Shown here piece after piece: positions 1 through 40,589 of a stretch of 64,000 nucleotides of DNA. The notes beneath the pieces were generated by a model. That model was given only the letters and a program-made list of their open reading frames with translations. It was not told the DNA's origin and searched no databases. Position 1 is the stretch's first letter, and each line of letters opens with the position of its first letter. Where the stretch lies: assembly GCF_052425735.1 (NCBI RefSeq), contig NC_135763.1:35278001-35342000 (forward strand). The letters run 5' to 3'. A program made the translations under genes and the position numbers. Source of the stretch: Oculina patagonica. Taxonomy: Eukaryota.

Positions 1-69
1 TACAAATCGGAATGTTTAACTGCCCGAGTTAAGCAGCTGCATCAGGGAATTTTGTACGAGTTATTAGCC

Positions 70-927
70 ATGGAAGAAAAAAAGGACCAACAGTTGACCA
101 AAAAGGTACGCTTCGATTTGAACGAGGAGGTTTTTCTTATTCCAAGCAAGTGGGATCGACTAAGCAAATGCAAGACTACCAATGCAAGAATCATAGACGC
201 GATGGCGGGCAAACACAAAACTCGCACCGCCTTGGATCGCCGAATTGATGTCAAGGGTAAACAGAACAGAAACAGAAAAACACAAAACTTATCTACGTAC
301 GGCAAGCGCGATTCAAATCCTGAACTTAATGGAAAGCTTTCTGACAACGGCAGGCCGAATTCCACGCCCAATGTAAAGACTAACAGCGCCAGGAAGACTG
401 CACGGTATAAAGAAGGCAACGAAAATACAAACAGCGGGAATTCTACACTTCCCGTCGAAGGAAGGCTAAAGTTTTATCACCGCCCTCCGCAAGAGTTGCC
501 GAAACTAGATCTTGTTTTGCCTAAGATTCCGTACACACCTGATCTTAAAAAGGCAATCGAGAAAGCGCTTCAAAGATCTCGAAGCAGACCTACTTTGGAG
601 AGTGGATTGAACAATACAACTTTGGCTACACAAAAAAATAATTCAGAACTTTCAACTCCACTTCCAAAGGAAAAATGTGAGGGGCTTTTTCAAAGAAGGC
701 TTTCGGACAGTTCTATCAGAATAGGAGATGAAAAACCGATAGAAAAGAAAGAAAACCAAGTCATGCCCAGCGAAGCTAAATTTAGCGAACTTTCTTCTAA
801 TCTTGATGGTTGGAGTCCGTTCTCGGCGTGGAGTTCAAAAGATAGCACCTTGCGATCAAATTCGACAGCGCCTATTACACGAGGGAGATCTATGTCTTCT
901 CTTATACCAAGTAGCATTCTATATTAA
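70..927 (+). CDS. Cluster gene 1: disordered basic protein with N-terminal PP1-docking RVxF motif (KKVRFDLNEEVFLIP)
   Basis: Long ORF (track 52..927); first ATG at 70 in GCCATGG context. Low-complexity S/T/N/K/R composition; KKVRF at 100-114; LPKL and LPKI motifs; RRLS site. Confidence 0.75.
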   Translation: MEEKKDQQLTKKVRFDLNEEVFLIPSKWDRLSKCKTTNARIIDAMAGKHKTRTALDRRIDVKGKQNRNRKTQNLSTYGKRDSNPELNGKLSDNGRPNSTPNVKTNSARKTARYKEGNENTNSGNSTLPVEGRLKFYHRPPQELPKLDLVLPKIPYTPDLKKAIEKALQRSRSRPTLESGLNNTTLATQKNNSELSTPLPKEKCEGLFQRRLSDSSIRIGDEKPIEKKENQVMPSEAKFSELSSNLDGWSPFSAWSSKDSTLRSNSTAPITRGRSMSSLIPSSILY

Positions 928-1375
928 TGTTGTTTTAACCAGTAAGGTAAAATAACATTGCGTGTTTCGAACATTTGTACATATTATGGTGAAACAGCTA
1001 TTGTCCCCTTTGTTTTCTAAGCTGGGACATGTACCCTCACGGAAATTGATGTATTTGCTGTACAAACGTCTATTTCAAAATCATTTTGATGTAAAAATAG
1101 AAATCAAAGTTATGTTGTTGATAATTGTCTATAGAAAAAAGTTAACACTGTGTAGAGATTGAGCGCTAACGTTGGCGAAGTTTGAGAAGCCAGCTTGCTT
1201 TGTTTGGAAAACAAAAGATGAACTTGGACATAGTCTGATAGTAGTTTAGTTGCTTAAAACATCAGAAGAAAAGAATTATCTTATCACATGTATATTTGAA
1301 ATCAAATTATCAACATCACCTTAACATCAACACCACCAACACAGCTAGGTTTATCATTGTCATGTTGTTATTGTT

Positions 1376-1422
<47 letters not shown>
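1376..1422. repeat. (ATC)n microsatellite
   Basis: About 15 perfect ATC units. Confidence 0.95.
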
Positions 1423-1797
1423 GGCATTTCTAAACTGCCAAAAAAAGTTCTTGATAAACACGAGATGTAAGAGGAAAAGTTATAATTTAGTGTTAGCTTG
1501 GATGTAAAATGAATTGTTTTAAAGAAAATTTATTTTGAAATTTTATACATTATTAATGTAAAATAATTTGTTTTGATCTTCAGTCATATCTTGGGTCTCA
1601 GAAAGGAAGAAATTTATTGTAAATGATCTCGCAGAATTCCTTAAGTGTAAAATGAACCAATCTACAAATAAACAAAGAAAAACTAGTTATAATAAGTCAC
1701 TTTATACCAATTAGCTTCTGTTGTGCCAAGCCGTTCAGCCTGGATTCAAAGAATTGTCTGAGCCCTTAGTTTTATCAGGAACGTGCTCAGCAGCGCC

Positions 1798-1810
1798 GTT
1801 ACTTGGCAAC
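1798..1810. promoter_or_regulatory. RFX X-box-like site GTTACTTGGCAAC
   Basis: Matches the GTNRCN(0-3)RGYAAC-type X-box consensus; function untested. Confidence 0.3.
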
Positions 1811-2061
1811 GATAAGGAACTTCATGTTGAATGTCACGGCATGACGTGTTATCATGAATTGTTGTTTTGGATGGTACATGCTTGCGTGAGAAGTTTCGTC
1901 GTGCTCACGCGAGTTTGCCCTTTTAAAGTCCAATGCATTTACTAGGGTTAGGTTTCTTGAACCACTCGCTTGTTGTGATTGCTTATTAAACCATTTCTTC
2001 TCCTCTCTCTCCACGTACCCCTGCCATCGGTCCAAATACTAGAATAATAATGTGTCAAAAC

Positions 2062-2575
2062 TAAGCCTATCCCGATTGTGCTCGGCAACGTTTGAGCAAC
2101 TTTTTCCAATTTCGAGCAACGTTTTGCAATTTTAAGACCGAAGATTTTCGAAAGCTGTCCGAATGTTGTTCGAAGGACAAATGACATTTTTAAGCATGAA
2201 TCATCGAACTTTTCCAAAGATTAACGAAATTTGCCGAAGATTTCCGAGAAAGCTCAGAAGATGCTTCAAGTTTCGTCTCATTCAGCATGAAAAACTCGTC
2301 AGGAAACATGACGTCATCGGTATCTGCACGATTGTTCGTCAAATTTTGGTCTTAAAATGTTATTTAGATATTTCTGCTGCAGTTAAATTGCATGAAAATG
2401 CTTAGAAATCTTACCTTTAAAGGGAAATTAGCAAATAATTGAGAAATGTTTCTTATTTGAAATCAACACTTTGGATTTTTTTTGAGCAACTTTCGGAGAA
2501 CTTTATTTTAGCAACTTTTTGGCATTCCACTGAGCAACTTTCCAGCATTTCACGAGCACATTCGGGACAGGCCTT
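2062..2575. mobile_element. Non-autonomous hAT-type DNA transposon (MITE)
   Basis: Imperfect TIRs TAAGCCTATCCCGATTGTGCTC / GAGCACATTCGGGACAGGCCTT. Exact 8-bp flanking duplication GTCAAAAC (2054-2061 and 2576-2583). Repeated subterminal GAGCAACTTT motifs. Confidence 0.85.
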
Positions 2576-4464
2576 GTCAAAACTTTTCCCTAAGGGTTTT
2601 AGGGAGCCAGAGAAACATTGTGCATTATTTTCGGACAACAGAAGATTACAAGGGTTGACTTTATAACATCGATAAACTGCTGATTGCGGCGGGAATTAAG
2701 AGCGCAACACGTGCGAATATCTAGATCGTACGTGACAGCTCAGTTTTGCTTCAGTCTCGTCGTGTTCTTGTGGTACGCGCAAGGGGGCATGGGTTCTAGA
2801 CGTCTGTACGCCTTCTAGAATGAGTTGCAAGGCGTCTGTTGTGTAATTAGTGTACTCGATATTGGTGGATTAGCGGCTAATCTACATAACATTAACCTCG
2901 CAATCTACTCCATTTAGCTCTATTAATCAACATTTATCCGTTAAGTCTTCGTCAAAATATGTCCTTCTTTTTAATTTCCAGACAAAAATTTCCACTGAGG
3001 TGCGCGGAAACTTTGTGGGATTATGTCACGAAAGGAGAACGCAAATCTTGTAATTGTTGTGAACGTGTTTGGTGCTAAGTATGTTTTGATTTCAACAAAT
3101 TAAGGCTTGAAGTTATTAGTTAGCTAATTATAAAGGACGTTTGGGTATCTGTTGAATTATAAGTATGTCTTCGTTTCGCGAATATCGCCGCTAAAAAATG
3201 TTATCCCAGCGAGGTACTCCAAGTCATGATTTCAAGGTTACGGTCAGCAATGGACTGTTTTTGTTAAGGAAGTTTTGTTTCTAATGGTCAACAAAAGTTT
3301 TGCATTGTTTCTTTACGTGATAATTGCCAAGATACTAAAAGTTAAGCTTTGTTTTCAAAAAGAAAAGCTATAATTAATTGCGTATAAATTAGTTAATGCT
3401 AATTGTGAATGAGCTCAAACCTTAGACACTCAATACAAAGTTTCTTGGCTTTCGAATTTTTTGTTTTGTGGATGTTTCATTATACATGAAAAAACTCGAA
3501 GGAACTTTCAAGACTACAACGATATTTCACATAATCAAGTCAGAAACGACATCGGCTGCTAAAATAAGAAGGTCAAGGTACACTCTCGTAAGGCGAACAT
3601 CACTTGCGCATTTTATGATGTAATTGCGTCAGTCCAACCCACCACTTATCGTTTTTAACAAGCGAGAAACTCTTGAAATTGCGTGCTGTACACCTTACCT
3701 CTCCTCAAGGGAGCCCGTATTGACTGAGAGATAAATTGTGGTATTGACTTCAGCGTGATCTGTCAGAACATTATGCAACCTGGCGAGAGACAAAACAGTT
3801 GACACGTCTCTCAAATCATTTTTGCGTCTCTTGTTGCTAAGTAGTTGCGCAAGTTAACTCGTTAACAGCAAATTAATGGCAATTACACGATCAACCTTGG
3901 CAAGGAATCACGTATTATGGAGAGACAGAAGATACCAAAGCAAGAGTTAGCGATACTAGCAATTCTTTCGACGATGGGCTGGCCAAAGGCCACATGAAGG
4001 TAGTCAATACCACCAACCTTACGGCTCAGACAAAAGTTAAACAGTACATTATTATTTCCACAATAACTTCAGGTGGACAACAGTTCGTCTCAATTCATCA
4101 AGGAAACGAATCCATTCTTCTCCTAATCCAAGATTCTTTCGACGGTGTGTCCTTGAATTGTGAAGAAGCTTGGATTCCAGTCTTATAGCTTACGAAACTT
4201 GCAAGAATTCAGTGAGTTACACTGATTTCCAGGAATCAACGGGTCGTGTATGCTGGTGTATGTTATAAAGTTTATCTCCGTAGTTTCTCGAACATCGCAA
4301 GCTTTGTCGTTTACAGCTTACAAACTGGAAATCGCGAATAATGTTTTACAGCTTCAGCGATGTGGATTAAGTGAATAACAGCTGAGAAAAGTTGTGCTGC
4401 TATATACCGAGTTTATAAGGTAACTGTTTGTTTTCTTAAGTACACTTTGACATTATCAAGAGTC

Positions 4465-5715
4465 ATGGCAGATCTCAAAGAAGACGAATACGACTTATGC
4501 CATTCGAATGACAATTCGACAGACAGCAGTCAGTCATCATTACAAACAGTTCTTGTTACATTTCGTATCGACAAGCCCTCAGCTAAACACATCAAGCGAG
4601 TCAGATTCAACAGCTTGGTTGAAGTGAAATTTATTCCCAGACGCAAGAAAGAAAAGAAGAGAAAGAGCAGGCTTGAGGATGAGGACAAGGAAGATAAATC
4701 ATGTGCGGACAATGCCACAGAGAAAACGAATCACAAAGACAACCCTACTGACAGTAATGGAAAAGAAACAGATATTAAGGGTGAAGTGAGCGTTTGCGAG
4801 CAATGGGTTGCTAAGGCAACTGACAAAGTCCCTGTAACTGGACAAGAGGGTTCGTGCCCTGACAAGGATCCTCAGAAATTCGAAGCAGAGGTAGAGAACG
4901 TATTGGACAAACCGTCTTCGAATCCAGCTTTGAAGGCCGAAACCAACGGGACGGCGACAAGTTTGATACAAGAGCCCACAAATGAAGCTAGTGACCCAGC
5001 TAAAGTGTTCGCTGGTGTTCTCAAATCGCGAAGGACAGTTCGTGAGAGTTACACAACAAATAAAATAACGCTTGGAGAAGACTACATCGGGAATGCGATG
5101 CGACTGACTCCAGCGACATTTTCAATCACGCCAGCGATCCAATTTAATGAATTCCCGGCTCGAAATGCAAAGAGACAGAGCGTACATGAGTTTGGAACCA
5201 AGGCAGTCTGGCGCTTAGAGAAACAAGCTGTCAAATTTTGTCAGGAAGCTGAAGCGCTGATTACGCAAGTCACAGAAAAGAACGCCTATATTCAAGCGAA
5301 ATTAAAACAACATACAGAAACAGTTCTTCTTGCCGGAAATCAGAGACACACTTTTCTCAAGGAGTATGCACAAAGCTCCAGAAAACCGTCGGTTATACCA
5401 GGTATTCCCTCCCTCGGAAAACCTGTTAATCAAGATGTATTTGGTACTAAACCAGTTACGAGGTTTCCGTATATTAACCACAAGAAACAGCAAAGTATCG
5501 TGGGATTGAGCCCGAGGTCATCACCCTCTGAACTTTCCCTACCCCAGCTCTTGTTGCATGACGGGAATGGAGCGCGCAGTCCGCCTGCAACGACTTATGG
5601 GAGAGGGGGATTTACTGACAACAAGCTCGAGCAAGTGAGACCAGAAGAGGGTGCGAATGGGAAACTTTTCTTACATTACTCTTATGGAGCAGCAAAGAAG
5701 TTAGGATTAAGATAA
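4465..5715 (+). CDS. Cluster gene 2: disordered protein with RVxF-phi-phi-R motif (KRVRFNSLVEVKFIPRR)
   Basis: 422-codon ORF, first ATG at 4465. Motif at 4594-4644, followed by a basic NLS-like stretch; FPYI and LPQL motifs; AATAAA at 6197. Confidence 0.8.
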   Translation: MADLKEDEYDLCHSNDNSTDSSQSSLQTVLVTFRIDKPSAKHIKRVRFNSLVEVKFIPRRKKEKKRKSRLEDEDKEDKSCADNATEKTNHKDNPTDSNGKETDIKGEVSVCEQWVAKATDKVPVTGQEGSCPDKDPQKFEAEVENVLDKPSSNPALKAETNGTATSLIQEPTNEASDPAKVFAGVLKSRRTVRESYTTNKITLGEDYIGNAMRLTPATFSITPAIQFNEFPARNAKRQSVHEFGTKAVWRLEKQAVKFCQEAEALITQVTEKNAYIQAKLKQHTETVLLAGNQRHTFLKEYAQSSRKPSVIPGIPSLGKPVNQDVFGTKPVTRFPYINHKKQQSIVGLSPRSSPSELSLPQLLLHDGNGARSPPATTYGRGGFTDNKLEQVRPEEGANGKLFLHYSYGAAKKLGLR

Positions 5716-6089
5716 TTGGAAAACGGCTGTGGATTCAGTTTGTTTGCGGGTAGACTTCGAACATAACAAAGATAAATGTTGTGAGTAGCATCAATTGGCA
5801 AGGCCATGTTGCTTAAAAAGTGTGGCATCACATTTTACGAAATTATGCGAGTTTATAGACTCAACAGCAACTGTAACACGGACAAGAAAGACAACAATTT
5901 AAATGAGCCGTGGTTTTCAAAACAAGAAGTCCAGTTTTAATTCTCAGGAAAATAGTAAAGCAGTAGAGTTTCATCTGTGAGTACCCCAAATGCAAAGTTT
6001 TCACCTTAGAGTCGCTCCGTTTGTTGCTTAGCGACTTCCTTTATGTATCATCGCGGGTTCAGTCGAATTCCGACCGCATTGAAGTGTCA

Positions 6090-6103
6090 GTTGCCCCGGT
6101 AAC
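6090..6103. promoter_or_regulatory. RFX X-box-like palindrome GTTGCCCCGGTAAC
   Basis: Near-perfect X-box consensus, lying 3' of gene 2. Confidence 0.3.
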
Positions 6104-6472
6104 CAAAAGGAGATTAGTCTATTTTATGTTGTAGCAGAAACATTGATTTAATTAAGACTGAAAAATTAGTTATGTGTAGGGTTAAAAAGTGTGTACAATA
6201 AATTAAAGATGTTTATATAAACCTTTAAATTTCGTTCCAAGTCTATTTCTGTGTAACATTGAAATTGAATTTTGACCAGATCTACAAATCTACTATCCAC
6301 TTCACACAAAATCATAGATCTTCACGCAGGCAGGAGACTGCTGCTAGGTAGGTGATATTGTCTCGATGCAAGGCCAATATTTCAAATTACTCAAATGAAA
6401 TGTATGGCAACGAGTAACAAGAATATCATTTCAAGTTTGGAAGATCTACGGCTAAAAAACAAGGAAAACACC

Positions 6473-6474
<2 letters not shown>

Positions 6475-6504
<30 letters not shown>
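6475..6504. repeat. Poly-G tract
   Basis: About 30 consecutive G. Confidence 0.9.
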
Positions 6505-6505
<1 letters not shown>

Positions 6506-9500
6506 TAGATAAACACGATAGAGACAACTCAGTATCGTTATTGAGTATAACCACAAGTTCAAGTGTCGATATTGTCCAACTGGCCGATTGCTTACTGTTT
6601 TTCACCAATTTGAGTAATATCTTTGAGTGGGCATGAAATGACGGCACAACATCTTTCCCTCAGACAGTTACGATTTTTTAAGAGACATTGCTATAGTTCG
6701 ACCAGCCTCGAGCGCGCGCTTTTCTTCAATATATTTATAATATATTCACAGTGGTGACAATTAACAGCCAATCAGAGAAGAGGATTTTCTTTTCCGTGGG
6801 AATAGGATTTGGCTAACATTCTAATCAGGTTAGGTTCTTATGGTTAAAATACCGCATTGTGTTTTAGTATTAAGGAGTGTTATAGAGAGTTCACGTGCGA
6901 ATCTTTCACCGCATTAATATGTGCTCATGTACTTTTACCGAACAATCTTCACCCTAGGAGTGTCCATATTTTAAGCCACTCTTTTCAACGGTGCATGCAT
7001 GTCAGGATTGGTGGTCCGCTAGAGTAATATCTTGTCCACTTAATGTGTATGTGTGGGAAAATATTTGCCGAATTTTAAAAGCTTCTCTTGTCGGTGTAAC
7101 TCACCCCGCCAAACATCGACCTCCTAGTAGTACACCTTTGTCGGCCGCTTTGATAAATATCGGGCCCCTACTACTGAGTGTAAAATCAGTCTAGATACTT
7201 ATCACGTTTAGCTGTGTACAAAGCCTCGAAAACAAGATCAAAGATTTATTTTTTAAACTTGGCACTTCTTAGCTCTTTACAGCCGATTAGGGGTTTCCAT
7301 GTTTTCGCCAGTTGGCGAAAGTACAAACCGAACCCGCCTTAATTCGTATATTCGCTTACATTTTGCCGCCGAAGTAGGCAAGCTAGGCTCGATTTCCAGC
7401 CGCTTTTGCGGGAAAATAAGCCCGCGATCATAGCGGACTCGAGAAGACGAGACTGTTGACAGGCCTCGAAAGAACTCGATCAGAAAAGGTGACCGTGCGC
7501 AAACATTCCATGACCTGTTCTTACTGGCTGTTGTCACCAGTGGCCGAGAGGAAAGAAGTAGCAGCCTGTGATCGTTGTAGGTTAGTTTACACATCTCTTA
7601 AAACATTGCCCCTGTACTTTTCCTACGACCCTGTTCAAAAGGACTTGGGACACCCATTGAAACTGGGCGCAAAAACACACTTCGCTAAATATAATCCTAG
7701 CCTAGTTCTGAAAGTTAGCTTAGGAATGTTGTTATAATAGGCTATTTTTTTTATAAGTTACCCCCTTTTCCCAAGCAATGTTGATTGCGATGAAAGCGAT
7801 TTGGATGTCTAATACCAACATTGCACCGGTAGGGGGAAAGGGTAAGGGGAGAGGAGGCTGATGCGTCATTTTGACGAGCTATTGCATATTAGTGTCCCAA
7901 GAGTATCAACCAGGGGGTAGCCTGGTTATGCAGGGACAGTTGCAGATGCTTCTTTTTTTCCCTTGGGGTCTCTCCCTTTCATCTCAGCCCCTGATACTCC
8001 TGCTAGGGGGTATGCAAATTCTCCTTCGCTGTCTGTGCTCACCACAGGCTTGTCAGTGTAATCGCGTGATATTTTTAAGACCCTGGGCTCGTTCAGGCTA
8101 AGTGCTAATAATTTTGCAAATGCTTAGTTTAGTTTCCGTTATAATAGTAATCGATAACTTAAAACACCCTCAAGAATAAATTTGCTCAGACTTGTCGTTG
8201 CCGGTCATTTGCAACTCTCAAACTTCTGTTTTATTGCCCAGTTAAGGGCCACTCTTCGCAAGTTCCCCGTCAACTATAATGGCATTTTATTTTTAAGTGA
8301 GACACTAACATTCAACATCGAAATTTGTTGCGAGACAAGTTGAGCGCGCGGTAGTATTACGGGCAACACTCGTTCACTTGCGATTCAACAATTTGCGAAA
8401 CAAGTTGAACAAATTTTGCTCGTATACCGGGCCTATTAATCACCAGAGATGTTGAATTTGAAACAGTGTATTTTTTTAAAGTAATATTGGTTGACGCGTT
8501 AGTAAAATAAGCAAGCCCAGAGCATAACAAATGGCTAATTTATTTATAGCATGCAAGATTGATATAAATTTTCCTGTATTAATTTGATCATGGTTTGTAT
8601 AAAGGCTTTCATAGACTACACTACAGGTAATGACACGATTGGAAAATGAACGATCAGGGAAACTGGTGATTAGCACCCTGTTCACCGTCCGATTTCACGC
8701 CCCCCCCCCCCCCCTTCTCTTTCTTTTTGGAAAGCCGGCCTGAGATTAACTCGTGAGATTTAACATGCCGTCTGGCCGAATTTTGCGTGTCGTGCCTGAG
8801 TTCGCGTGATGTATCAAATTGTTTAGCTTATAGTCAATTGCGCTCAGTAAATAAATGTCCATTAGAAGCCATGAATCTTTCATAACAGTTTTACAATATA
8901 TTGATGTCGCTCACGCACGCTTACATTCCCGCTTCGCCATTTGCGCATGCCCCAACAAAACTAACGGAGATTTGAAGCTCCATATTGAGGTATTCAAGTA
9001 GTAATTTCCTAAGCATGAAGTTGATACAAAAGTAATGTTTTTAGTTTGAGTCAGTGCAAGTTTCACCTCACAATCATCTGCAGTACAAGTGCTATATTTT
9101 TGGACGTCGTTATGAGCACGGTTTATCGTTCAATATATACTCATAGCTCAAAATAGCCCGTGACAACTGCAACTGAGAATTTCAAAAATGCACCTGACTG
9201 GTTTACGTCTTTTAAAGGGCAATGTTTTAAATTTAACTGCTCAGTTTTGGAACTCGCTCTCGCATAAAATTTCCAAAACATAGCAGCACATGATTTAAGT
9301 ATAAATAAAAGCAGTTGTTTTGACGCAATTTGAGGCAAAGCGACAGGTGCGATGCACCCCAAGGCCACAATTTACGTTTATAAATAGTTGAACTTCTCTT
9401 TCGTCCAATATCGCCAAAAAATTTCAATTCATGTCGCGTGCCAGCGATATTGTACCCTGAGAGGCAGTCCAAACGATGAATGAATTTGACAAGTTACCGA

Positions 9501-11119
9501 TATAACATGCACTTGTGCATGGTTGTCGTTCACTTTTACGTACTATAACTTTGTATATATGTTGCTTTCGCGGAGAGACACGCTGTGTACTTGAATTTGT
9601 ATACGTACCTGCTGAAATTTTGACACAAATTCTGCGTACAACTAAGTAAGTATTCAAATTGTTTAGGCCGTCCCTTTTTTTCTCTGTTTGCCGTCGTCCG
9701 ACCGACCCAAATTTTGGAGTTTTCCAAAAAACAAGTTGTGATATTATTTTGTCGATCCAACCGACCGACCCAAAATTAGGGAACGCATGTGCTTTCGACG
9801 GTAAACGGAGAAGAAAAGGAGAAGACATTATCAGTTTTATGCTAAGGATGACCCTCTGCGATCAGGCCCTCTTTCCTCTTGCAAAAACATACCGACTTCT
9901 TCCACGCCTTCTCGCCGCAGCAGGTTTATTCAGTTCGGAGAATAACAAACAGATTAGACCTTTACTGAGCAAAATACAATTCAGCAAGGAACGAAGAGAT
10001 CTAATCAGTTACTTTTCAATTTTTCGGTTTCTTATTTATATAGAGGTCTAATATTGTTGGTCAACATTTCTCAACATTGAAAAAAATTTAAAATTGTAGA
10101 TCCAGTACAATATTTTTTTTCGATATTTTGGTCGCTCAATCTTGGTGATCTAGTTCGGGTGCCAATTGATGTTTTAAGTCACAGCAGGAATTTTTTTTAA
10201 CTTAAGCTCACGTAAACTTCGGCGCGCCTATTCTAGGGATCCGGGAACACGATTCCCACGCCGCCTAGAGATTAACCTTTTGTCGCTCTCTTGGCCGACC
10301 AGTTTTGCGACACGCGCTGAGCTTGTGAAAAAAGAAACACTTGTTTTTTTTTACGAAAACAACACTCGAGAGTTGCGCTTTTTTCTTGCATTACCTCTGC
10401 TACAAGAAACCTGTTTTTTTTTCCATTGTTGCAGCACATTTTCTTTTACATAAGGCACGTGCGCCGGCAAGCGATAGTCGCTTCTGTGTTTGACACGTGT
10501 GTCTATAACCTGTTATCGCAGACATCGGATTTCCTTGTTGTTCTAGAACAATTACTCCTTAGATGCACTAAATACGCTCAATAAACGTGCGTGGTTCGGC
10601 GATTGTGCGTTCTAATTGTTACACGTGTGTGGAGGAGACTGATTATTTGTTCTCATGAGAACAACACGACTTCTTAGTAAGATGTCGCTCCAAACAAATA
10701 CCTGTTAAATGATCAAATCGATGAACTGAAAGGGGTTCTTTTGCGACATAGCTGCCCTTCTACTACTGAGAGAGATTTTTGTACGAAAACGATCCCTGTT
10801 TTCGACGATCCTTGTTTTTAAAAAAAGATCAACAGTTTTGGTTACGTTCATCCAGTTAAGTAGTTTTAGCCAAGCCAATCGTAGAGATACCAGGATCAAT
10901 CGTTTAAACATTACAAGGCGCGGAGACCACCTTGTTTTTCAAGGTACGTACCAAAACTGCTATTGTGATTCAACCGAAAAGAGCTAATTACTTTCCTGAA
11001 ACGAAACTTATGCGGCTGTTTCTGAACAGCTGAAAGTTTAATTTACTTTTGAAGGCACAGTTGTGCCTTTCAAGTGTTTTACTGATGAGCAGACACGAAA
11101 ATTTCCTTTCTTCGTGTAG

Positions 11120-11131
11120 AGAACTGTTCAG
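11120..11131 (+). other. Putative 12-nt non-coding microexon (5' UTR of the ankyrin gene)
   Basis: Branch-like TTACTGAT, then pyrimidine tract TTTCCTTTCTTCGTGTAG|AGAACTGTTCAG|GTAAGT. An upstream donor AAG|GTACGT lies at 10944. Confidence 0.4.
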
Positions 11132-12420
11132 GTAAGTGTGTCGCCGAAAAACAAAAAACAAAGAACTTAAACACAAGCGGGGACCAGACAATTCCACACC
11201 CGCTTCCTACACTCTTTTGATCTTTGCGCAGCCGGTCACTCTGATCCAAGTCGGAGAAGGAAAACGCTAGGGAGGAAATATTATTAACGTCTGCACGCAC
11301 TGAGTAAAAAGGTGATGACTTAATTTGGCTGGAAAAGAGTCGACCTTTTTACCGACTACCGGAGGGATAGTTTTGAGGTTGATTTAAAACGGGGTAGAAA
11401 TCACGGACGCCTAGAGTTTGCTTTCAACCTAGCCTTAAAAAGCAAAACAAAGAAAACACAGGCGTCTCTTTCTCCTCCTTTCCCGAACAGGAAGTAGTTA
11501 AGATATCAACGGCTTCCTTTCATTCCCAAAATGACTTCCTTCAGTCTCCGCGCTCCTTCTACAACGCGTCATTTCCGGTTTGCTGTAAGTAGATTTGCAT
11601 AAGTGCATAATGGCAAATTAGGTTAAGACAAATACTGTTTAGTTCTTGTTTGAACCGATTGCGGTCACCAGAAATATTGTTTGAGAATTAAATGTGAAAG
11701 GTGAAACAATATTTGAACAACCGTTCAGAGCTTTTAGCACTTTCAAACTGTTGTTATGAGTTGTCAACCAGTTTTTCATTTTTAGACTTTTTGTTTTTTC
11801 ATCTCGGATGGGCGGAAGAATACAATACTTTGATTTATTATTATTTATTTTCTGAAAAGAACGCCCGTAGATGGTTGATTTTCAACATGCATCTTATTAG
11901 CAAGCTGTTTCTCTAGAAATGGCAGCAATCCAATCCACTCACAATGAAATTGAAAATTATGTAAACTCGAACATTTTAAGCTATAATTAGTTTTACCAAA
12001 ATTGCTCTTCGGATAGCTGTAAAAAGGGTATGAAACAAGCTAAAGCTCTTTCGGTTTGACCCAATGATGAAACAAAAGGGAAAAAAATAATAAAAATAAA
12101 CTGCGGTTACTGCGCCGTGCGAGCGCTCAACAATTCAGGAATTGTAATAACATTACAAATAGCCCTTGACGTCCTTGACGTAGTTTTACGGAAAAAAAAA
12201 TAAATAAAAGAAAAAAAAAATTACAAGCAGTGTTTTTGTCTGTTGCGCAAGTGTTCTGGATTCCCAGGAGAATTTTTTTTAAAACAAAATCGCTCGAAAA
12301 GTTGTTATGTTGTTATGATCCTTTTAGGCTTGTCCGAGGTGTTGATGAAAACTCGCCACCCGCCGTTTTCAAGTAAGGACAATATAGCATTACACAAACA
12401 AACGCGGGGTATTTAAGCTT

Positions 12421-12877
12421 GACCAATCACAGAGCGAATTACTACGTGGCCTTTTGGATGCATCTCGACCGCACAATGTATTCCGGCCACTGCATGTAAA
12501 TTTAAATCACTCCTGTGGGTTTTAGCGATCTGCTTCAGTAATTGTCGTGGAAAAGGTCGCAGTTGAATACATCAATATAATAGGACGCCTCCCGTCAAAA
12601 GTTGTAGGAAATCCGAGACAAATTAGCCAATTTTACGATTGTATTTCTCGTCGTCAGGTAAGCCGGTTACGTTATGTTTCGCCATCGTAAACTTTTTGTC
12701 CTTCTAGAATTCGGTGTCCAGCGCTAATTGCTTCTTTTTTCCGGAGTTTTATAAACCCCTTTGTTCTATTTTGAAAGGAATACAAACCGAGGCATGTTAC
12801 GAAATAATTCAGGTTTAGAAAGTTAAATTATCTCATGGCTAATCGATGCATCGTCAATATCTTCTCTCTTTCAACAG
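12421..12877 (+). promoter_or_regulatory. Putative proximal promoter, non-coding exon and 5' UTR intron (12658-12877) of the ankyrin gene
   Basis: CCAAT box (GACCAATCAC, 12421), TACGTGGC element, TATA-like AATATAA near 12574. Donor CAG|GTAAGC at 12658; acceptor CTTCTCTCTTTCAACAG at 12877. Confidence 0.5.
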
Positions 12878-12950
12878 GATCGCGGCTTGAATGAATGGTT
12901 GAACACCTTAATGAACACTCGTGGAAAGCTTTAATGCTTTCTTCTTCACT

Positions 12951-14102
12951 ATGAGCGCAGTGTTTCACCAAGCCGTGCTAGAGGGAGACACAACGAAAGT
13001 GAAATTTATATTGAAATATGGGCAAGGAATACGAGTGAATCAACCGAATAAATATGGCCTCACAGCTCTACAACAAGCATGTGTGGATGGAAATTTAGGA
13101 CTGGCGAACTTTCTTCTCGAGCGCGGAGCGGATTTGAGTCTTGTGGACTCCAATGGACGCACTGCGCTTCATCTCGCCTCTGAGCAAGGGCATTTAGACA
13201 TTGCTAGCTTGCTGGTGAATTCAGCTTGTGCTGATGTGAATGCAAGAAATGGCTGCGGACAAAAGGCGGTTGATGTTGCCGGTAACGACCAAGTCCGAGC
13301 GCTTCTTTCGCAAGCGATGCTCTCGGAGAGTTTCAAACAGAAATGTTCCTTCGCTCAAACCTTGGACGAAGGAGTGAGTTACGAGTTTAAAAACGTTCCA
13401 GGTTGGCGCTATTCTATCTCGAGCACGTCAACAGATTCTGGCGTATCTGAAGACTCTACATACAGCCACGATAGCGGTTATGATTCTAGATACCCAAGCA
13501 GGCATTATCAAGCCGCAAGTTATAATAATTACAGCTGTGGAAACCCTGAGCAAAACGATTATTATGTTACCGAAGCTACACCGTATTATCGCGATCAAAG
13601 AACTGACAAAGAGTTCATTTCTGCCCGGCGAGTAGAACCCTCTAATCACGCTATGTTGACAAAAAGTCATTCATTTACCGGCAGTCGACACGAATACAGT
13701 GTAAAATTGGAAAACCCGGTTGCGGTGGACAGCAAGCAGTCCCTGGGTGGCGAATCCGCGCGATATCGCAGACAACAAAAAATTCGCAAAGACCCTACAA
13801 GAAGAAAGACTGTGACCTTTGGCGAAAATGAATCGTATACTATTTCCCCTCGCGAGGAGCAGCGATATCCTAAGAGTTATTCGCTCAGTCGCCCGCCAAT
13901 TTCAAGCAGTAATAGACCCCCATTACCAGAGACATGGAGAGATTCAACAACCTATGCAACCCGGTTTACGCAGCCCAGGGAAGCAAGCTCCACAAAAGAC
14001 AAGGAAAGACGCTCATCCGTAGACAAGGGTGAAAACCCTCGGAAAGAGGGAAAGTCTAAAAAGCACATTCTATCAGGATTCTTGGAAAAATACGTACATT
14101 AG
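12951..14102 (+). CDS. Cluster gene 3: ankyrin-repeat protein (MYPT/PPP1R12-PPP1R27/NRARP-like repeats) with disordered tail carrying RVxF and a DSGxxS degron
   Basis: Ankyrin consensus segments GLTALQQACVDGN, GRTALHLASEQGHLDIA and GQKAVDVA. RRKTVTF at 13800-13820; DSGYDS at 13470-13487. First in-frame ATG at 12951; AATAAA at 14751. Confidence 0.9.
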   Translation: MSAVFHQAVLEGDTTKVKFILKYGQGIRVNQPNKYGLTALQQACVDGNLGLANFLLERGADLSLVDSNGRTALHLASEQGHLDIASLLVNSACADVNARNGCGQKAVDVAGNDQVRALLSQAMLSESFKQKCSFAQTLDEGVSYEFKNVPGWRYSISSTSTDSGVSEDSTYSHDSGYDSRYPSRHYQAASYNNYSCGNPEQNDYYVTEATPYYRDQRTDKEFISARRVEPSNHAMLTKSHSFTGSRHEYSVKLENPVAVDSKQSLGGESARYRRQQKIRKDPTRRKTVTFGENESYTISPREEQRYPKSYSLSRPPISSSNRPPLPETWRDSTTYATRFTQPREASSTKDKERRSSVDKGENPRKEGKSKKHILSGFLEKYVH

Positions 14103-18664: not shown

Positions 18665-19958
18665 AGTGCTATTGCTGCCAACGTTTTATCAATGGGCGAC
18701 AAGTTTCGACGGATTATTTAATTGGATCACAATCTTCCACTTATTTTCTCTGATTTGCTGCGTATGTATAGACTCTCAGCTCTACCACGAAACATCATCC
18801 AAATGTTACTCATCAGTAACGGTTTTGTAAAACAGTGCATGCAAACTCTAGAAATGGCGAAAACGCCCTAGTAAGCGTGTACGTCTTTCAATGTCTACTG
18901 TTCAAGATGTCTGCAAACTTGTCGATGTAACATGGGTTTGTCTTGGTACCGCCTTTTTGGCGCCACCCCACAGCATCAGATGCTGGCCTTCAAGAGCGCT
19001 TCTACTGCATGAACGGACACCTCCCGTAAGCACACTTTGTGCCGAGGTCTCAGCCACAGACAAACACTACATTTTTAACCTCCCATAAGCGGACACTTTT
19101 TCATGGTCCCAAGGGTGCCGGTTGCCAACCGATTCTCCACTAGCTGGTGTTGTTCTCGGCAACGCTTGTAAATATCCAACTGGTTTGGCTCCTGCCAGCT
19201 GTTCTATGTTCATAGTGTTTTAGATTTGGTAACACTGGTTTTGTTAAGTCCCATAAGGGGAGTGATCAATTAAGATTTTTTGTGTGTGCTGTTCACGCGA
19301 GGTTCTATAGTTTTGAGGTTCCTTTTAATATTTCCGGCATGCATCTACTGCATCAAGCTATGACAGTTGAATATGGAATCTCTTTCCTGTATTTTAGCAT
19401 TTCGCTTTTATAAAGCTTGAATTTCAATAGTTTTATTCCGATGCTAATCAGCGAATATTGAAACTCTAGGATAAAAAGCTTTATTTTTCCAGCTTAATGG
19501 CAGCAATCTATCCCAACCTTCCCAAATCTTCCGTTAACAAATATTTTTTTACCTTATGTTATATCATTTTGACGTTGTTTTGATAGAAAGAAAATCTTGA
19601 ACTTCGAATAATGGATAAATAGATAGCATGACTTTGTTCTGTCTTCTTTGCACATCTGATAAGTAGAATTTAGGTTCTATATCTTGGACAGCGATGCTCA
19701 CGCGAGTTTTCTCGGCTTGGCGTATTAAAGTGCACACGAACGGATTGGAGCGCGAGCTCCAACACTCACTGATGAGGAGATGTCACGAATAGAAAAGAAA
19801 CGATCGGCTCAGTACTCTTCTTTAAATTCTAATAAATAGTATATGAGTAATCAGAAGTACCCGGTTCGAAGTGATAAATTTCGATTTCAAAATAGCAAAG
19901 CAGCATCAAATTTATGGACACGTATTTCAAGGACGCTAGACTTGGTTTTCCTTGATAA

Positions 19959-23951: not shown

Positions 23952-24749
23952 TCACCGCGTATAGCGAATTCTGTCCGGAGAAACTCGTTTTGTTCTTGAA
24001 TTTCTTCGTTGTTGTTTAGGCTCTCGAATACTCTTCGTCTCACTCAAACACTGCTCAAGTTTCATAAACCTTGGATCATCGAGACATTTTTGCGTTTTTT
24101 CTCGAGAAAGTTTTAGCATTTCTGGTACACTTGGCTGTTTTCGAAGCGGTGGCTTTCTCTTAGACAAAGCAGCGGGTTCTCGAAATGCTCCTTCGTTAGC
24201 GTGAATTGGCGGTAACTGATTCGGAGCTAAGTCTTCTAACTCAGGTGCTTGAGTGCCTGAAAGTTTTTTCCTGCTGCCGGCCACCGGGTTGGCGCTGGCT
24301 TCGTTTGATGGTCTATTTTGAACTGCTAATCGAACAAGCGTTATCGCCTTTTCCCAACGCCCCTTCGCCGCTTTGTTATGCCCTACGACTTCACCACCCA
24401 GGTTTGCGTGATTTGTCTCCAAGTTCGTAGCTACAATTGATCTTTTCCTTGCATCAATCGGCGGTAACTGCTCGCTACCTTGAGCATGTTTGCTTTCTCG
24501 ACGGTCAGGGAGCGTTCGCGGCCTTTCTTCGGACGCCGAAACTTGTTTCGTGGCAAATTCTAACTGTCTGTAAGTCATGTACTTATCCTGCCTGAATTGA
24601 TGTTTAGATAAAGTGTCTAAGCGCGTGTTGAGGGCCCGATCTTCGTAGGCATTCTCCTTGAGTATTGCGTTTCCAACCTTGTTCTTTAGCCGCATTTCGC
24701 CAGTCTTGCTGATTCTAATGAGCGGGTATCTTGACGAACTCACACTCAT
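23952..24749 (-). CDS. Cluster gene 6: coiled-coil + 2x LPPI + CaM-binding-like helix + DPRF motif
   Basis: 265-aa ATG ORF containing ENAYEDRALNTRLDTL, QLPPID, QLPPIH, KGRWEKAITLVRLAV and DDPRFMKL (DPRF at 24066-24077). Confidence 0.85.
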   Translation of the reverse strand: MSVSSSRYPLIRISKTGEMRLKNKVGNAILKENAYEDRALNTRLDTLSKHQFRQDKYMTYRQLEFATKQVSASEERPRTLPDRRESKHAQGSEQLPPIDARKRSIVATNLETNHANLGGEVVGHNKAAKGRWEKAITLVRLAVQNRPSNEASANPVAGSRKKLSGTQAPELEDLAPNQLPPIHANEGAFREPAALSKRKPPLRKQPSVPEMLKLSREKTQKCLDDPRFMKLEQCLSETKSIREPKQQRRNSRTKRVSPDRIRYTR

Positions 24750-25780
24750 CTTGAATCAATGGCCGCGACTTCTAGAGATGCCTCAAATCATGGGCAATAT
24801 TTTCCGTGCCCCGTATCAGTAATCCCAAGAAAAGACCGCGAACCTCTACGAAATCTTTGAATACCTTTTCGTATTAGCGGATGTGATGTGACAAGGTCCG
24901 GTTTTGTTGTTGCGAAACTGGATCCGTTTGCCCAGAGGCTCTTAGCATAAAAGTTCACTGTACCGCAGACTGTTGATCTTAACCACATTAAACTACTTCA
25001 AGGCGTTTTAAAAAATTTTACGTTTCCTCAGATAAGACAGATCTGATCGCGAATGTTTGATAAACACACCATCAAGAACAAAGCTCCAATAAAATACATC
25101 CCGGGTGATTTGTTTGCTTAAGACTTCGCTTTGCATATACCGTCATTGAATAATTTGAATTTCTAAAACGATATGCATTTTAGCAGGTCCCGGGAGACTA
25201 CAATGGAAAAGAATAAAGCGCATTAATGGATCTTTAGAACGCTTTCATCGCATTAGGAATGCGAAGAGTGCGAACAAAGCTTGAAATGATTGGGTTTTAA
25301 AAGTTTCCCGTAGTTTTCAAGACGTTTCACTTGTCAGGAAAAAATTATCTCGACACGACGTTTTTATTTGCTTATAACTAAGTGCGAATTTTTCATTAAC
25401 ACTTCCATTGTCACCATTATGAATTGTTTATTTAATTAGGATTTATCAGCGACAATATTCTCAACGGCGCAAACATTGTGCAGGATTTTAGGATTCCGTA
25501 TATCTTTACCAACATTAAAACCTTTCTTTTAACTGCCCGAGGCATAGCAGACCACATATGCGTGAAATTGGTGGCACGTGAGAAGATTTAATGAGGTGCA
25601 AGCTTGGTTCGCGTGGGCAAGCCTTCTCTTTGACTGAAGGGTGAACGAACTTTAGAACTTTATTGAGGTTTATTGACAAAAGGCAAGCTAGGACGTGCTA
25701 AAATTACACAGAAATAGACCCGTTTTCAGCCGTTTCGAGAGGTGACTTCACAAAATCATTGTCTGTTTCTGTCACGTTTA

Positions 25781-26344
25781 GGGCCTGTTTATATGGAGGA
25801 GAGTTGTCCCTGGTAGGAGGGTACCCTCCATACCGAGCCACCCCAGGCGAGAGAGTTTTCATACGTTTCTTTATAAAGAGCCAAACTGTTTATATGAGAA
25901 ATTGCAAAGTTGGCTCGGGGGGCAGGGTGACCCTGGGTGGAGGGTCACTCGCTTTGATGGTGGGGTGACCCTGGGGAGCGAGCCAACTTTTTCCATATAA
26001 ACAGTTTGGTATTTTTGCCTCGCCTACCAGGGACAAGTTGACACATACGGAGCATGCGCAAACGCTAAAATCAGCAAAAACAAAATTGCAAATAAATGAA
26101 ATCGAAGTCGGTGGTAAATTAGTCCAAAAAATGGTCTTGGTCGACGATTCAGCGTTCCTGATTTTAGAAAAAGCAGCCATAATAGATGTTTCAAAACAAC
26201 TCTTGCCAGTCTTTGAACCGAGAGGGCCAAGTTTTGGCTCGGTCAACAGGGACAACTTTTACATATAAACGCTCGTTAAAAGATGACTCGGGGGAGAGGG
26301 TAACCCTCCTACCAGGGACAGCTCTCTTCCATATAAACAGGCCC
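25781..26344. mobile_element. PIF/Harbinger-type MITE
   Basis: Long TIRs GGGCCTGTTTATATGGA.GAGAG.TGTCCCTGGTAGGAGGG at both ends; 3-bp TTA target duplication. Confidence 0.85.
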
Positions 26345-26422
26345 TTAGTCGCACTTGGGCGTTTAAAAAGAGAGATGGGGGTGGGGGCGCTCATGCTTAT
26401 AAATTGTAGTGTAAGTAAGTAA

Positions 26423-26831
26423 GGCCCGGTTCAGACGCCGATCTTATTCATGAACCGAACTTAATTCCTTGAATTAAGTACATGAAAAGATCGGCGTCTG
26501 AATCAAATTAGAACACTATTTCAATTTGGAACGGCTCACCCGTTCTTCCCGCCTGGCTTGGCCGAGAGTTTCGCCTGTGGAACGCCTTTGGAACGGCTTT
26601 GATTCGGACGCCGTACTTTTCATGTGCCGATCCTAATTCATAAATTATTATAATGTATTTTGACTGGTTTTATTGGAACTGTATTTGGAACGGCTTCGGA
26701 ACGGCCAATGAAAGTACGGCGTCTGAAGTCAAGAGGCGTACTTTTTTGTCATTTTGGGAGCCCTCGGTCACAAATCGGCGACACAATTGAGTTCGGAAAC
26801 TTCATGAAAAGTTCGGCGTCTGAACCGGGCC
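26423..26831. mobile_element. PIF/Harbinger-type MITE
   Basis: TIR GGCCCGGTTCAGACGCCGA / TCGGCGTCTGAACCGGGCC; TAA target duplication (26420-26422 and 26832-26834). Confidence 0.88.
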
Positions 26832-29800
26832 TAAGAATCTTTATTCAAGTACCAGCCCTTATATTACTGGGAACAATAAAAAAAATAGTCACAGTAAAAA
26901 AATATATCATAATCGGCCGCTTAAACTTTTAAATAATTCTTAAAATTTGCAAGAATAAAAGATTAAACGAATCGAAATACATACAATTAAAAATAAATAT
27001 ATTAATTGAAATCATGGCACGCTGGGTGTAAAATAGATAGCAAGAGGCACAATTGCTGTCAGCGTCCAGTTATGAGATTTTTCTGTAGTTTGATGCCCGA
27101 TGCACGGTTTATTTCTTTTGGAGCCCCAAGGAAAATTTCTGCTATATTTGGGCAAAGTAATGGCGCTCTGAAGCTTTTTTTCTCTGTTACTCAACCTTGT
27201 AATTCAATATATTTAACCTGCCCGCTTTAGTCCGCGTAATTCCGTAGCATTACGCGGACTTAACAGGTAGAGAGGTTTATGCCCTGCATCAATTTTGAAA
27301 AGCTTCTGCCTGCATATATATGTCAGTCATAATTAAAGGTGAGCCATTCTTTTGTTGTCAGTATGAATATTGGCCGTTTGACAACTGTCGGCAATAAAGG
27401 ATGTCCTTTAGCTATATAGCTAAAATTCCAGTCCAATTGTCAGTTATCTGGTACAACACATCTAAGAGCCTCTTTGCAATATCAAAACAAATGGGATTGT
27501 ATGGCAATATTATAAGTAAGTATCGGATGTCAGTGAAAATCTTGGCCTTTTGTTAACCAAAGAGGTGACTCAGTAGAATAAAGCAAGTCACAAACTACGG
27601 CGTCATCTTGATGTGCAGCTAAATTCTCCGAACTAACTTCAAAAGAAATGTGTGACAATAAGTTAGAGGAATTTACATTTCGATAACTGTAAATTGCGGC
27701 TAACCTGTATGTCGTATTTTCCACTTTCACAAATGTACTTTAAACCACCACGAAGATTAATACCCAATGACCAATGAGATATCTTGACACAATTTAACCA
27801 GACGCAGTAACACGATTTCTGGTAATATGATAACAAATACAGTAATTTGCATCTCTGTCCTAAAAATAATGAATCCATAACGTCATTTTCATCAATTTCA
27901 GAAGTCGCGACACTTTCGTGATTTGCTTCACAGATTAAACAAAGCGATAAACCGCGAAATCTCATTCCGGAAATTTGTGTTTTTAAGGAAAGGAGAGATT
28001 ACAAACTCACCACAAAACTAATCCACATTGATAATGAACAGTCCCTCCCTTTAATTTCACCCTTTTTCTTTTCTGTCTGTTCACGTCAGTCACAGGTAAA
28101 TGCCATATGGTTTCTTTCGTGATACCTGCTTCGTCAATTTAATATTTGCCTTCCAACCGAAAATGTAAATAATTATTTATTTGGTATACTGGTTGATTTT
28201 GTTTAACCTTTTAAACTGCATCAATATCAAGTAGCCGCAAAGAAGCAATTTTTGAAAATTAAACAAATCAATCCGGAAGTGGCGACTGAATCGCTCGTAA
28301 GAGAGGCTTTCGCTCGCCCTAGCTCCTTCATTGTCACGTTACGTGCGGAAAAAATTGGCAAGTTTTTTCAAGCTTGTCGTTCGTAATTCGTCTATCTTCG
28401 TCAGTTGAAACCATCCTTGTTTATTTTTGGGTTGTTATTACTCCTTTGGTGATTTTCCATGTTAGAAAGCTGTTATTTGAGGTTTCCTTCAATTTATAAC
28501 TAATCAGAAAAATGACTGTGTAATTGCTCCTTTAAATATAGACGCTCGGATAACTCAGTGTTTCGATTTCCAGACCCTGGATGACTATCTAAGTTATTCC
28601 GCTAAGCTATATCACTCTTTCACTCACCAAAACTGTTGATTTTCCGCTTCGACCGAACTGGCTTCTACCAAATTAATTTGGTCTTTGTCAAATCATTTAA
28701 ATGAAATCTCTCTGCGCCGAGTAATCTTTCGCTGATGATCATTTTGTACAGACAGGAGTAGAGATTATAGAAGATAATCAACAAAGCGATATTGTCCTGA
28801 TGTACCAGATTTTAACATGAAAACAAACAAAGTATGGCCGCTGGTATTTAACCTGCGGTCAGGAAAGAACGCCTGATCGCATGTTAGCTGGTATTGAGTC
28901 ATGCGATCTCAGTTTCTCGTAAACAAAGGAAATTGCATACGTATTTTATACGGGAAGTAAATAAGCGCACGGTGTTTACAAATACAAAGTAGTAATATAC
29001 TACACCATATTTGCATGAGAAATGCGCACCATTATTAACTGAGCAAGCAGCTATTCACTTTGCAGACTTTGCCGCGCAACTATCCAATAACAGGACAATA
29101 AAAGACAATGCTGTGTAAGCCATCGAACAAAAGGCATACAATCGGTGTTTGAATGTCTTTTCGGCATTTACTTATTGTCAATGTTTTTTTTCTTGCGATG
29201 AAGACGCTCGACAACATCTCGTCTCTCATCAGTGAAGTGCTAAATGCTAAGCTTGTTACCCTTGTGGGCAACTTGTCACCCCGATATCAACACCGTGATT
29301 AATTTCACTGTGATATTTGCGCCAGCGGTATTTAAGGTCGCCAGTCATTAGCCTGGGAGTCTGTACGCATTGTTGAGCACTGTCGGTGCATCTCTTCAAA
29401 GGTTACAGAGGTTTTGGACGAAACAACACGGAAAAATTCGGTCGAGTCACGGACTGTTGATGTGAGTTTCGAACCAGAGACGACAAAACAGCGCTCGCAG
29501 GTGAACGCTGTTAGAAGGGGGTAGAAGAAGCCAGCCTAGGAGGACATTGTTGCACATTTAATGACCATTCTGCGTGACAAATCAGTTTCTCTGAATATAG
29601 TCTGCAATTTAGCAGCCCATCGTTATTGTACTCGAAGGCGAAAAGCGTGGGTTTGGAATAGAAACAAAACAAGAGTGTCAACACTTGAAACGAAGTACTA
29701 CAAGCACGGAACGGAGGAAATGGAGGAAACATTGTCGGAGAGGTGCACACAGTTGTTTTCAGCGATTAAAATACTTTGGATTATCCTGGATCACAATCAT

Positions 29801-29815
29801 GTTGCTTTAGGCAAC
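29801..29815. promoter_or_regulatory. RFX X-box-like site GTTGCTTTAGGCAAC immediately upstream of gene 7
   Basis: Palindromic GTTGC..GCAAC ending 34 nt before ATG 29849. Confidence 0.35.
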
Positions 29816-29848
29816 GTTTTGTTTAATTACTAAAAGACCCTAAAAGTC

Positions 29849-33257: not shown

Positions 33258-33824
33258 CTATCGTGCACTCCGAAGTTGCATAATTGTGTATCGCGAGTGA
33301 AGCTGTGCAGGTTTTGAGATATCTAGAACGGCTGTAGTCCCCGAACGTGTATCATTGCCATTCAATATCTCAGGCTGCTTAGACTGCTTAAGATCACGTT
33401 CCAAGCCTCTAGAGAAAGCTTGAAACTTTCTCTCTTCTTGAGTTCTAAAACTCCCATACGTCGCCTTATTAAACACAGGCGCGGCTACATCGGCACCCTT
33501 ATTTCCCAGTATATAAGGAAGGTATTGACTTGGCGTAGTTCGTCGTTCCATGGGAGTCGCACTTTTATTTTTGATGCTGTTTCCATCGTGAATTGTCTTT
33601 GTTTGAATTATGTCGACAGAGTTAACTCTCGTCAATCGCAGAACCTCCCGTGATGCCAGCCTTTCGGGTTCGCGCAAACTTGGGTTGATTATTTTGTCTG
33701 CATTTACCGCCTGTGCGTTTATGACCTTTATCCTGTCATTGTAGCAAAGTCTATAAGGTGTTCTTTTCTCGTTATTATCAAAATCAACAGCACATTCTTG
33801 GTCAAACTTTAAACTTGAATCCAT
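33258..33824 (-). CDS. Cluster gene 8: disordered protein with LPYI motif
   Basis: ORF 33258..33854, first in-frame ATG at 33824; YLPYI and RRTT. An out-of-frame upstream ATG near 33870 makes the start uncertain. Confidence 0.6.
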   Translation of the reverse strand: MDSSLKFDQECAVDFDNNEKRTPYRLCYNDRIKVINAQAVNADKIINPSLREPERLASREVLRLTRVNSVDIIQTKTIHDGNSIKNKSATPMERRTTPSQYLPYILGNKGADVAAPVFNKATYGSFRTQEERKFQAFSRGLERDLKQSKQPEILNGNDTRSGTTAVLDISKPAQLHSRYTIMQLRSAR

Positions 33825-38791: not shown

Positions 38792-38895
38792 AATGTGCAT
38801 GCGACAAAATTATTAATTTTAGTGAAATGTTTAAGCTTGCTATATGTTAATCAAGTTCATAATGCACGCGGGAAACAAGGAGAGCACGAGAGATA

Positions 38896-40480: not shown

Positions 40481-40589
40481 TAACTTGAGTTTGGCCGCGA
40501 CAACTTCATACTACTTGAGTTAAGCGTCCACGTTTTGAGCTACCATGTTCCGTAAAAGAATGCAGACACGGTATTTTTAACATGCATGT

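Follow-up and report, generated by a model that had tools for sequence, protein, structure and literature searches.

Candidate RVxF-phi-phi docking strings for protein phosphatase 1 in three adjacent intronless genes of the coral Oculina patagonica

We analyzed a stretch of 64,000 nucleotides of the genome of the coral Oculina patagonica (NCBI RefSeq assembly GCF_052425735.1, contig NC_135763.1, forward-strand positions 35,278,001 to 35,342,000), here called the window, with positions counted from its first letter. At its start lie three consecutive intronless genes, g1, g2, and g3, each of which carries a short string resembling the docking sites of partners of protein phosphatase 1 (PP1), namely, an RVxF motif followed by a hydrophobic (phi-phi) strand. 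The genes, given as open reading frames (ORFs), and their main features are as follows.

70-927, forward strand: g1, an intronless ORF of 285 amino acids (aa) without a Pfam family.
100-159, forward strand: candidate docking string of g1, KKVRF-DLNEE-VFLIP-SKWDR (residues 11 to 30).
694-714, forward strand: RRLSDSS of g1, a conserved site of the PKA type.
4465-5715, forward strand: g2, an intronless ORF of 416 aa without a Pfam family.
4594-4644, forward strand: candidate docking string of g2, KRVRF-NSLVE-VKFIP-RR (residues 44 to 60).
12951-14102, forward strand: g3, an intronless ORF of 383 aa; ankyrin repeats at the N terminus are followed by a long tail of variable sequence.
12963-13250, forward strand: ankyrin-repeat domain of g3 (Pfam Ank_2/Ank/Ank_4/Ank_5).
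13413-13457, forward strand: conserved SISSTSTDSGVSEDS block of g3, which ranks first in conservation among the windows of this protein.
13803-13853, forward strand: candidate docking string of g3, RKTVTF-GENES-YTISP-R (residues 285 to 301).

A Pfam scan of the 13 long ORFs of the window (E up to 1) identified ankyrin repeats in g3 as the sole family; g1, g2, and the remaining ten long ORFs gave no match. The three peptides that an earlier reading of the sequence alone (the sequence-only reading) had placed in g1 to g3 were recovered exactly by translation of the forward strand, which gives KKVRFDLNEEVFLIPSKWDR at 100-159 (core KKVRF, g1), KRVRFNSLVEVKFIPRR at 4594-4644 (core KRVRF, g2), and RKTVTFGENESYTISPR at 13803-13853 (core KTVTF, g3). 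All three motifs satisfied the loose, the Hendrickx, and the Meiselbach RVxF patterns, the strict Meiselbach pattern being [HKR][ACHKMNQRSTV]V[CHKNQRST][FW], and of the window's 15 ORFs with 120 aa or more, g1 to g3 alone gave strict matches (0 of the 12 others). The spacing, described in that reading as similar, proved to be one identical register: in g1, g2, and g3, Phe is followed by five residues, four strand residues, and Pro at F+10. The hydrophobic strand spans F+5 to F+9 in each protein, in agreement with the spacing of 5 to 8 residues after Phe that defines phi-phi, and the motifs are flanked by a basic N-terminal side and an acidic C-terminal side, as expected of RVxF sites. The extended signature RVxF-phi-phi-R, which had been proposed for all three, held in part. 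Its RVxF-phi-phi portion was supported in every protein, but an Arg element is plausible in g1 only, where invariant W28-D29 and then R30 (F+13 to F+15) lie one residue off the Y-x-R of Phactr1. A generic run of Lys and Arg from F+11 follows the Pro of g2, and g3 has an Arg at F+11 plus a poorly conserved Arg at F+15. No Trp was found near F+20 (the Trp motif) in g1, g2, or g3.

To estimate chance, we shuffled each protein 20,000 times. The probability of at least one strict match was 0.013 for g1, 0.048 for g2, and 0.033 for g3, and that of a strict match with phi-phi at 5 to 8 residues was 0.002 for g1 and 0.008 for g2; the YTI of g3 in this species does not pass the phi-phi pattern. The loose RVxF pattern was present in 17 to 36% of the shuffles of g1 to g3. 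A whole genome could well contain such a run of three weak matches, so that conservation carries the case.

Conservation in orthologs, which the sequence-only reading had put forward as a check, was borne out, with the motif invariant in 22 to 24 orthologs per family, plus Nematostella. The nearest named homologs of the genes belong to Desmophyllum, Montipora, Acropora, and Stylophora. Homologs of g1 found by a word-based search numbered 46, from stony corals only; across 24 orthologs (down to 33% overall identity), K12, V13, R14, F15, D16, L17, E20, F22, I24, P25, K27, W28, D29, and L31 were invariant, and the 20-residue windows starting from residues 11 to 12 were the best conserved in the protein. 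The Nematostella ortholog of g1 retains KKVRFDLNHEVFFIPTKWDRLS. In 22 orthologs of g2, the invariant residues were K44, R45, V46, R47, F48, N49, S50, V52, I57, and P58, and the motif window ranked top for conservation in the protein. An exhaustive profile search with g2 returned 17 representatives among 1.84 billion proteins, including A7REQ8 of Nematostella, and [RK]VRFN[SN]LVEVRFIP was retained in all five of the most distant full-length homologs, A7REQ8 included. Orthologs of g3 extend to sea anemones. R284, R285, T287, V288, T289, F290, and G291 were invariant in 22 sequences from corals to anemones, and among 9-residue windows RRKTVTFGE ranked first in the tail and second in the whole protein; around the motif, the tail is gappy and variable in the ortholog alignment. 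A second KVKF in g3 (residues 16 to 19) lies inside the first ankyrin repeat (Pfam Ank_2 match) and was set aside as structural rather than docking. When motif codons of coral and Nematostella were compared, the ratio of synonymous to nonsynonymous changes was 10:3 of 22 codons for g1, 10:1 of 15 for g2, and 5:1 of 9 for g3, an excess of synonymous changes that therefore points to selection for the peptide rather than for the DNA sequence. Strong purifying selection thus acts on the motifs of g1 to g3 in stony corals as in sea anemones, and in each family the motif is the disordered segment with the highest conservation.

Modeling of a complex with the PP1 catalytic subunit (PP1c), another check named in the sequence-only reading, was run for g1. 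Canonical PP1c genes number at least two in the coral, and the exon that forms the groove encodes ...ETLMCSFQ in them. Since these genes are split by introns, the model was built with a PP1-beta-like ORF that is full-length and comes from a metagenome contig (L017:355-1356; E = 1e-212 to PDB entry 1s70_A). With the pair g1(1-50) and PP1c(1-305), the motif was placed in the RVxF and phi-phi sites of PP1, and the ipSAE was 0.94 in all three runs, against 0.00 for the best control; 51 of 78 solved complexes attain that mark, as do 2 of 108 mismatched pairs. The runs had at least 64% of contacts in common, and the predicted local distance difference test score (pLDDT) of the partner was at least 55. 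In the modeled interface, g1 residues 11 to 26 face PP1 residues 169-170, 243-244, 262, 289-301, 75, and 79, as well as 25, 72, and 271. V13 and F15 contact PP1 169-170, 243-244, 262, and 289-293 (the RVxF pocket), residues 19 to 24 contact 293-298, 75, and 79 (the beta14/phi-phi site), and PP1 25, 72, and 271 are the equivalents of P24, D71, and P270 of the Arg pocket, in which D71 is the residue contacted by an Arg motif. No residue of g1 past 26 was confidently placed. In AlphaFold2 predictions from ortholog alignments, g1 was disordered but for a helix at 157-171 (mean pLDDT 52.8) and g2 was disordered except for a helix at 245-286 (mean pLDDT 41.4); in both, the motif region had no secondary structure and a low pLDDT, which fits a short linear motif.

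Contigs of three sequencing runs guessed to be RNA were colinear with the window over 1-1350 and about 3520-6000 and left 1400-2000 and 2600-3000 empty, and a fourth run had contigs in every bin. This coverage pattern likely fits unspliced transcripts of g1 and g2, the library types being guessed and not on record. Between the two genes, 2000-2600 is a high-copy repeat with many rearranged joints, at which summed contig depth reached about 14,000 in one run versus about 20 in the flanks. The frame of g1 is open upstream to the first base of the window (1-69), a close ortholog of g1 (P0122) is annotated with a similar N-terminal extension of 42 residues, and an RNA-like contig runs 246 nucleotides past the window start. 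The true start of g1 may lie upstream of the window, though MEEKK is the start in most orthologs.

The neighborhood of the three genes was also followed in other genomes. In Nematostella, the orthologs of g2 and g1 lie 4 kb apart on opposite strands; in another distant contig, those of g2 and g3 share a strand and are separated by 11 kb; and in several corals, orthologs of g1 to g3 were reported on equal-sized contigs. The Nematostella ortholog of g3 shares a chromosome with g1-g2, at a distance of 13.8 Mb, and is followed by orthologs of g4 to g14 in the same order. The Nematostella ortholog of g2 is A7REQ8, and those of the other two genes are proteins of 287 aa (L089, 15286-16149) and 366 aa (L090, 10001-11101). 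The window as a whole consists of about 14 clustered intronless genes whose proteins are disordered and K/R/S-rich, and on Nematostella OW051987.1 (about 1.67-1.71 Mb, within about 40 kb), the order and relative orientation of this cluster (12951-50713) are kept. The linkage of g1 to g3 is old, and the window is a deeply conserved gene cluster. No further motif-bearing intronless ORF was found in the 20 kb upstream of the window. The rows that belong to the wider cluster are the following.

OW051987.1 of Nematostella, loci L090, L094, L097, and L098: orthologs of g3, g4, g5, g6, g7, g8, the DPRF-motif gene, g11/12, g13, and g14.
L097 at 1028-1816 and 3347-3949 and L090 at 19142-19948, Nematostella: loci for the DPRFxxL and HVxPxWP motifs.
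49661-50713, reverse strand: gene 14 ORF.
49679-49693, reverse strand: C-terminal RKIHF of gene 14, eight residues from the stop (end ...RKIHFELTTH).

Several observations concern the cluster rather than g1 to g3. A DPRFxxL motif (ADPRFKGLMEKLVP, EDPRFVQL) of window positions 24066-43176 is found also in the Nematostella orthologs, as is HVxPxWP followed by KRKMILLKF from the same positions; because both are kept in Nematostella, they are ancient short motifs. An LP[PKQ]I element recurs in many proteins of the cluster, and the Nematostella cluster has an inserted gene of 649 aa that seemingly starts with a signal-like hydrophobic stretch. The RKIHF of gene 14, which the sequence-only reading had added to the three strings, is present at the C terminus but absent from the syntenic ortholog of Nematostella. 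It contains the spinophilin core KIHF and passes the looser Hendrickx pattern only, not that of Meiselbach. No RVxF was found at the C terminus of the Nematostella ortholog (recognized by ...YLQARFGRS...), a weak negative given that this C terminus overlaps a tandem repeat. The repeat (L098, 18954-19894, beside the gene 14 ortholog) is open in several frames. Gene 14 is not counted among the candidates for PP1 docking.

Considering the shared register, its conservation, and the model of g1, we regard it as rather likely that g1, g2, and g3 are new candidate PP1-interacting proteins of the RVxF-phi-phi type. They are probably unrelated to one another, largely disordered, and so far found in Hexacorallia only. 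On this view, the RVxF pocket of PP1 would receive Val and Phe from [KR][KRT]V[RT]F, the acidic or polar linker of five residues would come next, and the following four residues would add a beta-strand to PP1 strand beta14 at the phi-phi(xF) site; in g1, the conserved W-D-R may reach the Arg pocket. The holoenzyme would then be directed by the rest of the protein, that is, by the ankyrin repeats in g3 and by the helix in g1 and g2. As an alternative to targeting, PP1 might act in cis on conserved phosphosites of its own partner, RRLSDSS in g1 and SSTSTDSGVSEDS in g3, and it is the invariance of these two that makes dephosphorylation in cis attractive. Each of the three proteins could equally be a targeting subunit, a PP1-recruiting substrate, or an inhibitor.

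In the RRLSDSS of g1, a candidate phosphosite that would be acted on in cis, R209 and S212 were invariant and R210, L211, D213, S214, and S215 were at least 90% conserved. The extreme C terminus of g1, IP.SILY (910-924), was almost invariant, and both it and RRLSDSS are retained in Nematostella; we rejected the C-terminal SSILY as a SILK-like element, as its final residue is Tyr instead of Lys or Arg and it lies C-terminal to RVxF. In g3, S155, S157, S158, S160, T161, D162, S163, G164, and V165 were invariant across 22 sequences, and the block that they form, S-x-SSTSTDSGVSEDS (13413-13457), outranks the ankyrin repeats in conservation. The SSTSTDSGVSEDS block may be a phosphosite cluster resembling a DSG-type phosphodegron or a CK1/GSK3 priming cluster, and we speculate that it could be a cis target of PP1 recruited via KTVTF nearby.

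Neighboring genes with one docking register could also have arisen as ancient tandem duplicates of a single PP1-binding gene, with only the docking motif surviving. In favor of this are the arrangement of the three as intronless neighbors on one strand, the age of their linkage (orthologs of g1 and g2 lie together in Nematostella, and those of g2 and g3 in the other distant contig), and the identical register, with Pro at F+10. The motif is also the only similarity that hhalign found between the families, a result that agrees with the description of these proteins in the sequence-only reading as otherwise dissimilar. The matches, however, comprised 26 columns between g1 and g2 (E = 0.039; probability, 1.3%) and 22 columns between g1 and g3 (E = 0.69; probability, 0.07%), probabilities that are negligible over so few columns, and the architecture of g3 differs, with ankyrin repeats and a C-terminal motif versus an N-terminal one in g1 and g2. 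Such common descent is conceivable, though we think it unlikely.

Somewhat less probable is that the conserved [KR]V[RT]F-strand-Pro string serves a partner other than PP1, a structure, or localization and that its likeness to PP1 ligands is coincidental. The conserved block exceeds a minimal RVxF-phi-phi, since it runs to L31 in g1 and is preceded by an invariant S.L.T.L...K..K in g2, the K/R-rich flanks could act in nuclear import, and just one of the three proteins was modeled with PP1. This coincidence would nevertheless have to account for three unrelated proteins that share the strict PP1 consensus and one register, for the invariance of precisely the Val and Phe that PP1 requires, and for a model that puts g1 in the grooves of PP1 with high confidence. 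A chance origin of the motifs, as random hits of a degenerate pattern in basic proteins of low complexity, is hardly credible: the frequency of the loose pattern in shuffles and the loss of the RKIHF of gene 14 in Nematostella would suit it, but the strict-pattern probabilities are low, and conservation of the motifs from corals to sea anemones despite heavy synonymous change contradicts it for g1 to g3.

Docking of PP1 by g1 to g3 accounts for the motifs better in our judgment, and certain points weigh against it. The RVxF pattern is degenerate, g2 and g3 have no clear Arg or Trp element, and the phi-phi part of g3, Y[TFY]I, is retained in stony corals only and not in sea anemones. The complex model covers g1 only; PP1-peptide complexes have been solved in large number and may have been memorized by the predictor, which could explain the high score, and the controls were without any RVxF, so that a pass shows likeness and not binding. 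Expression of g1 and g2 was read from runs whose library type was guessed. On sequence and model, PP1 docking by these proteins is a prediction.

Beyond the single proteins, g1 to g3 might form the PP1-recruiting arm of an ancient coregulated Hexacorallia cluster of about 14 intronless genes, a module for cell-type-specific phosphoregulation in, for example, sperm or ciliated cells, equipped with PP1 adaptors of its own; this extension is decidedly doubtful. We know of no other conserved cluster of PP1 regulator genes in an animal, and what is unusual here is the identical register in three unrelated neighbors together with their conserved linkage. PP1 derives its specificity from hundreds of docking partners, of which, to our knowledge, those characterized are nearly all from vertebrates, yeast, or fly. 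If the proposal is true, g1 to g3 would be three PP1 partners of the cnidarian lineage with no bilaterian counterpart recognizable by sequence, and g3 would unite ankyrin repeats, a PNUTS-like KTVTF site, and an adjacent invariant phosphosite cluster. Confirmed binding would make them entry points to phosphatase regulation in corals and a case of three unrelated disordered proteins with one exact docking register. The orthologs in Nematostella make the idea testable in a tractable model.

Searches for known relatives of the strings gave little. A look-up of g1 in an atlas gave best scores of 0.76 and 0.75, one of the two being to a yeast cluster named GLC7-interacting protein 1; both were below threshold and were not used as evidence. 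The same look-up gave no usable match for g2 and generic ANK clusters only for g3. A sequence search of the PDB gave no match for the motif region of g1, and a match of the g3 motif region to a designed repeat protein was discarded as spurious and additive. A literature search with the Nematostella accessions and for RVxF in cnidarians found nothing relevant.

Among characterized PP1 partners, the sequence-only reading had compared the strings with those of PHACTR, neurabin, GADD34, and PNUTS. Membership of these families was not supported: no homology was found, and Pfam finds no shared domain, with RPEL, PDZ, TFIIS-N, and PP1c_bdg all absent from g1 to g3 in the scan at E up to 1. The likeness is in the strings themselves. 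In Phactr1, LIRF (519-522) is followed by the phi-phi residues EVAD (527-530), Y534-x-R536 (F+12 to F+14), and W542. Its phi-phi strand starts from F+5, as in g1 to g3, whereas g1 to g3 are without the Trp motif and the basic residues that follow Pro in g2 and g3 are no more than generic. The PNUTS (PPP1R10) string consists of TVTW (398-401), F413 (W+12), and R420 (W+19). Its core KTVTW differs from the KTVTF of g3 by F for W, and the two proteins are alike in a basic N-terminal flank and an acidic linker, with aromatic or hydrophobic strand residues after it. They differ in that the Phe motif of PNUTS is at W+12 and its Arg at W+19, whereas the strand of g3 is at F+5 to F+8 and its first Arg at F+11, and g3 has ankyrin repeats instead of TFIIS-N or any other PNUTS domain. 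In the ankyrin subunits of PP1 (MYPT1/PPP1R12, PPP1R16, PPP1R27, and ASPP), ankyrin repeats occur together with RVxF, as they do in g3. In MYPT-type subunits, RVxF lies just N-terminal to the repeats; g3 does not have this arrangement, and its candidate (286-290) is in the disordered tail, separated from the preceding repeats by about 170 residues. NIPP1 (PPP1R8) has RVTF, an acidic linker of five residues, two hydrophobic residues (II), and then NP, a shape matched by TVTF-GENES-YTI-SP in g3, which is without an FHA domain. By analogy, g1, g2, and g3 would work like the docking strings of NIPP1, PNUTS, and the Phactr type without belonging to those families.

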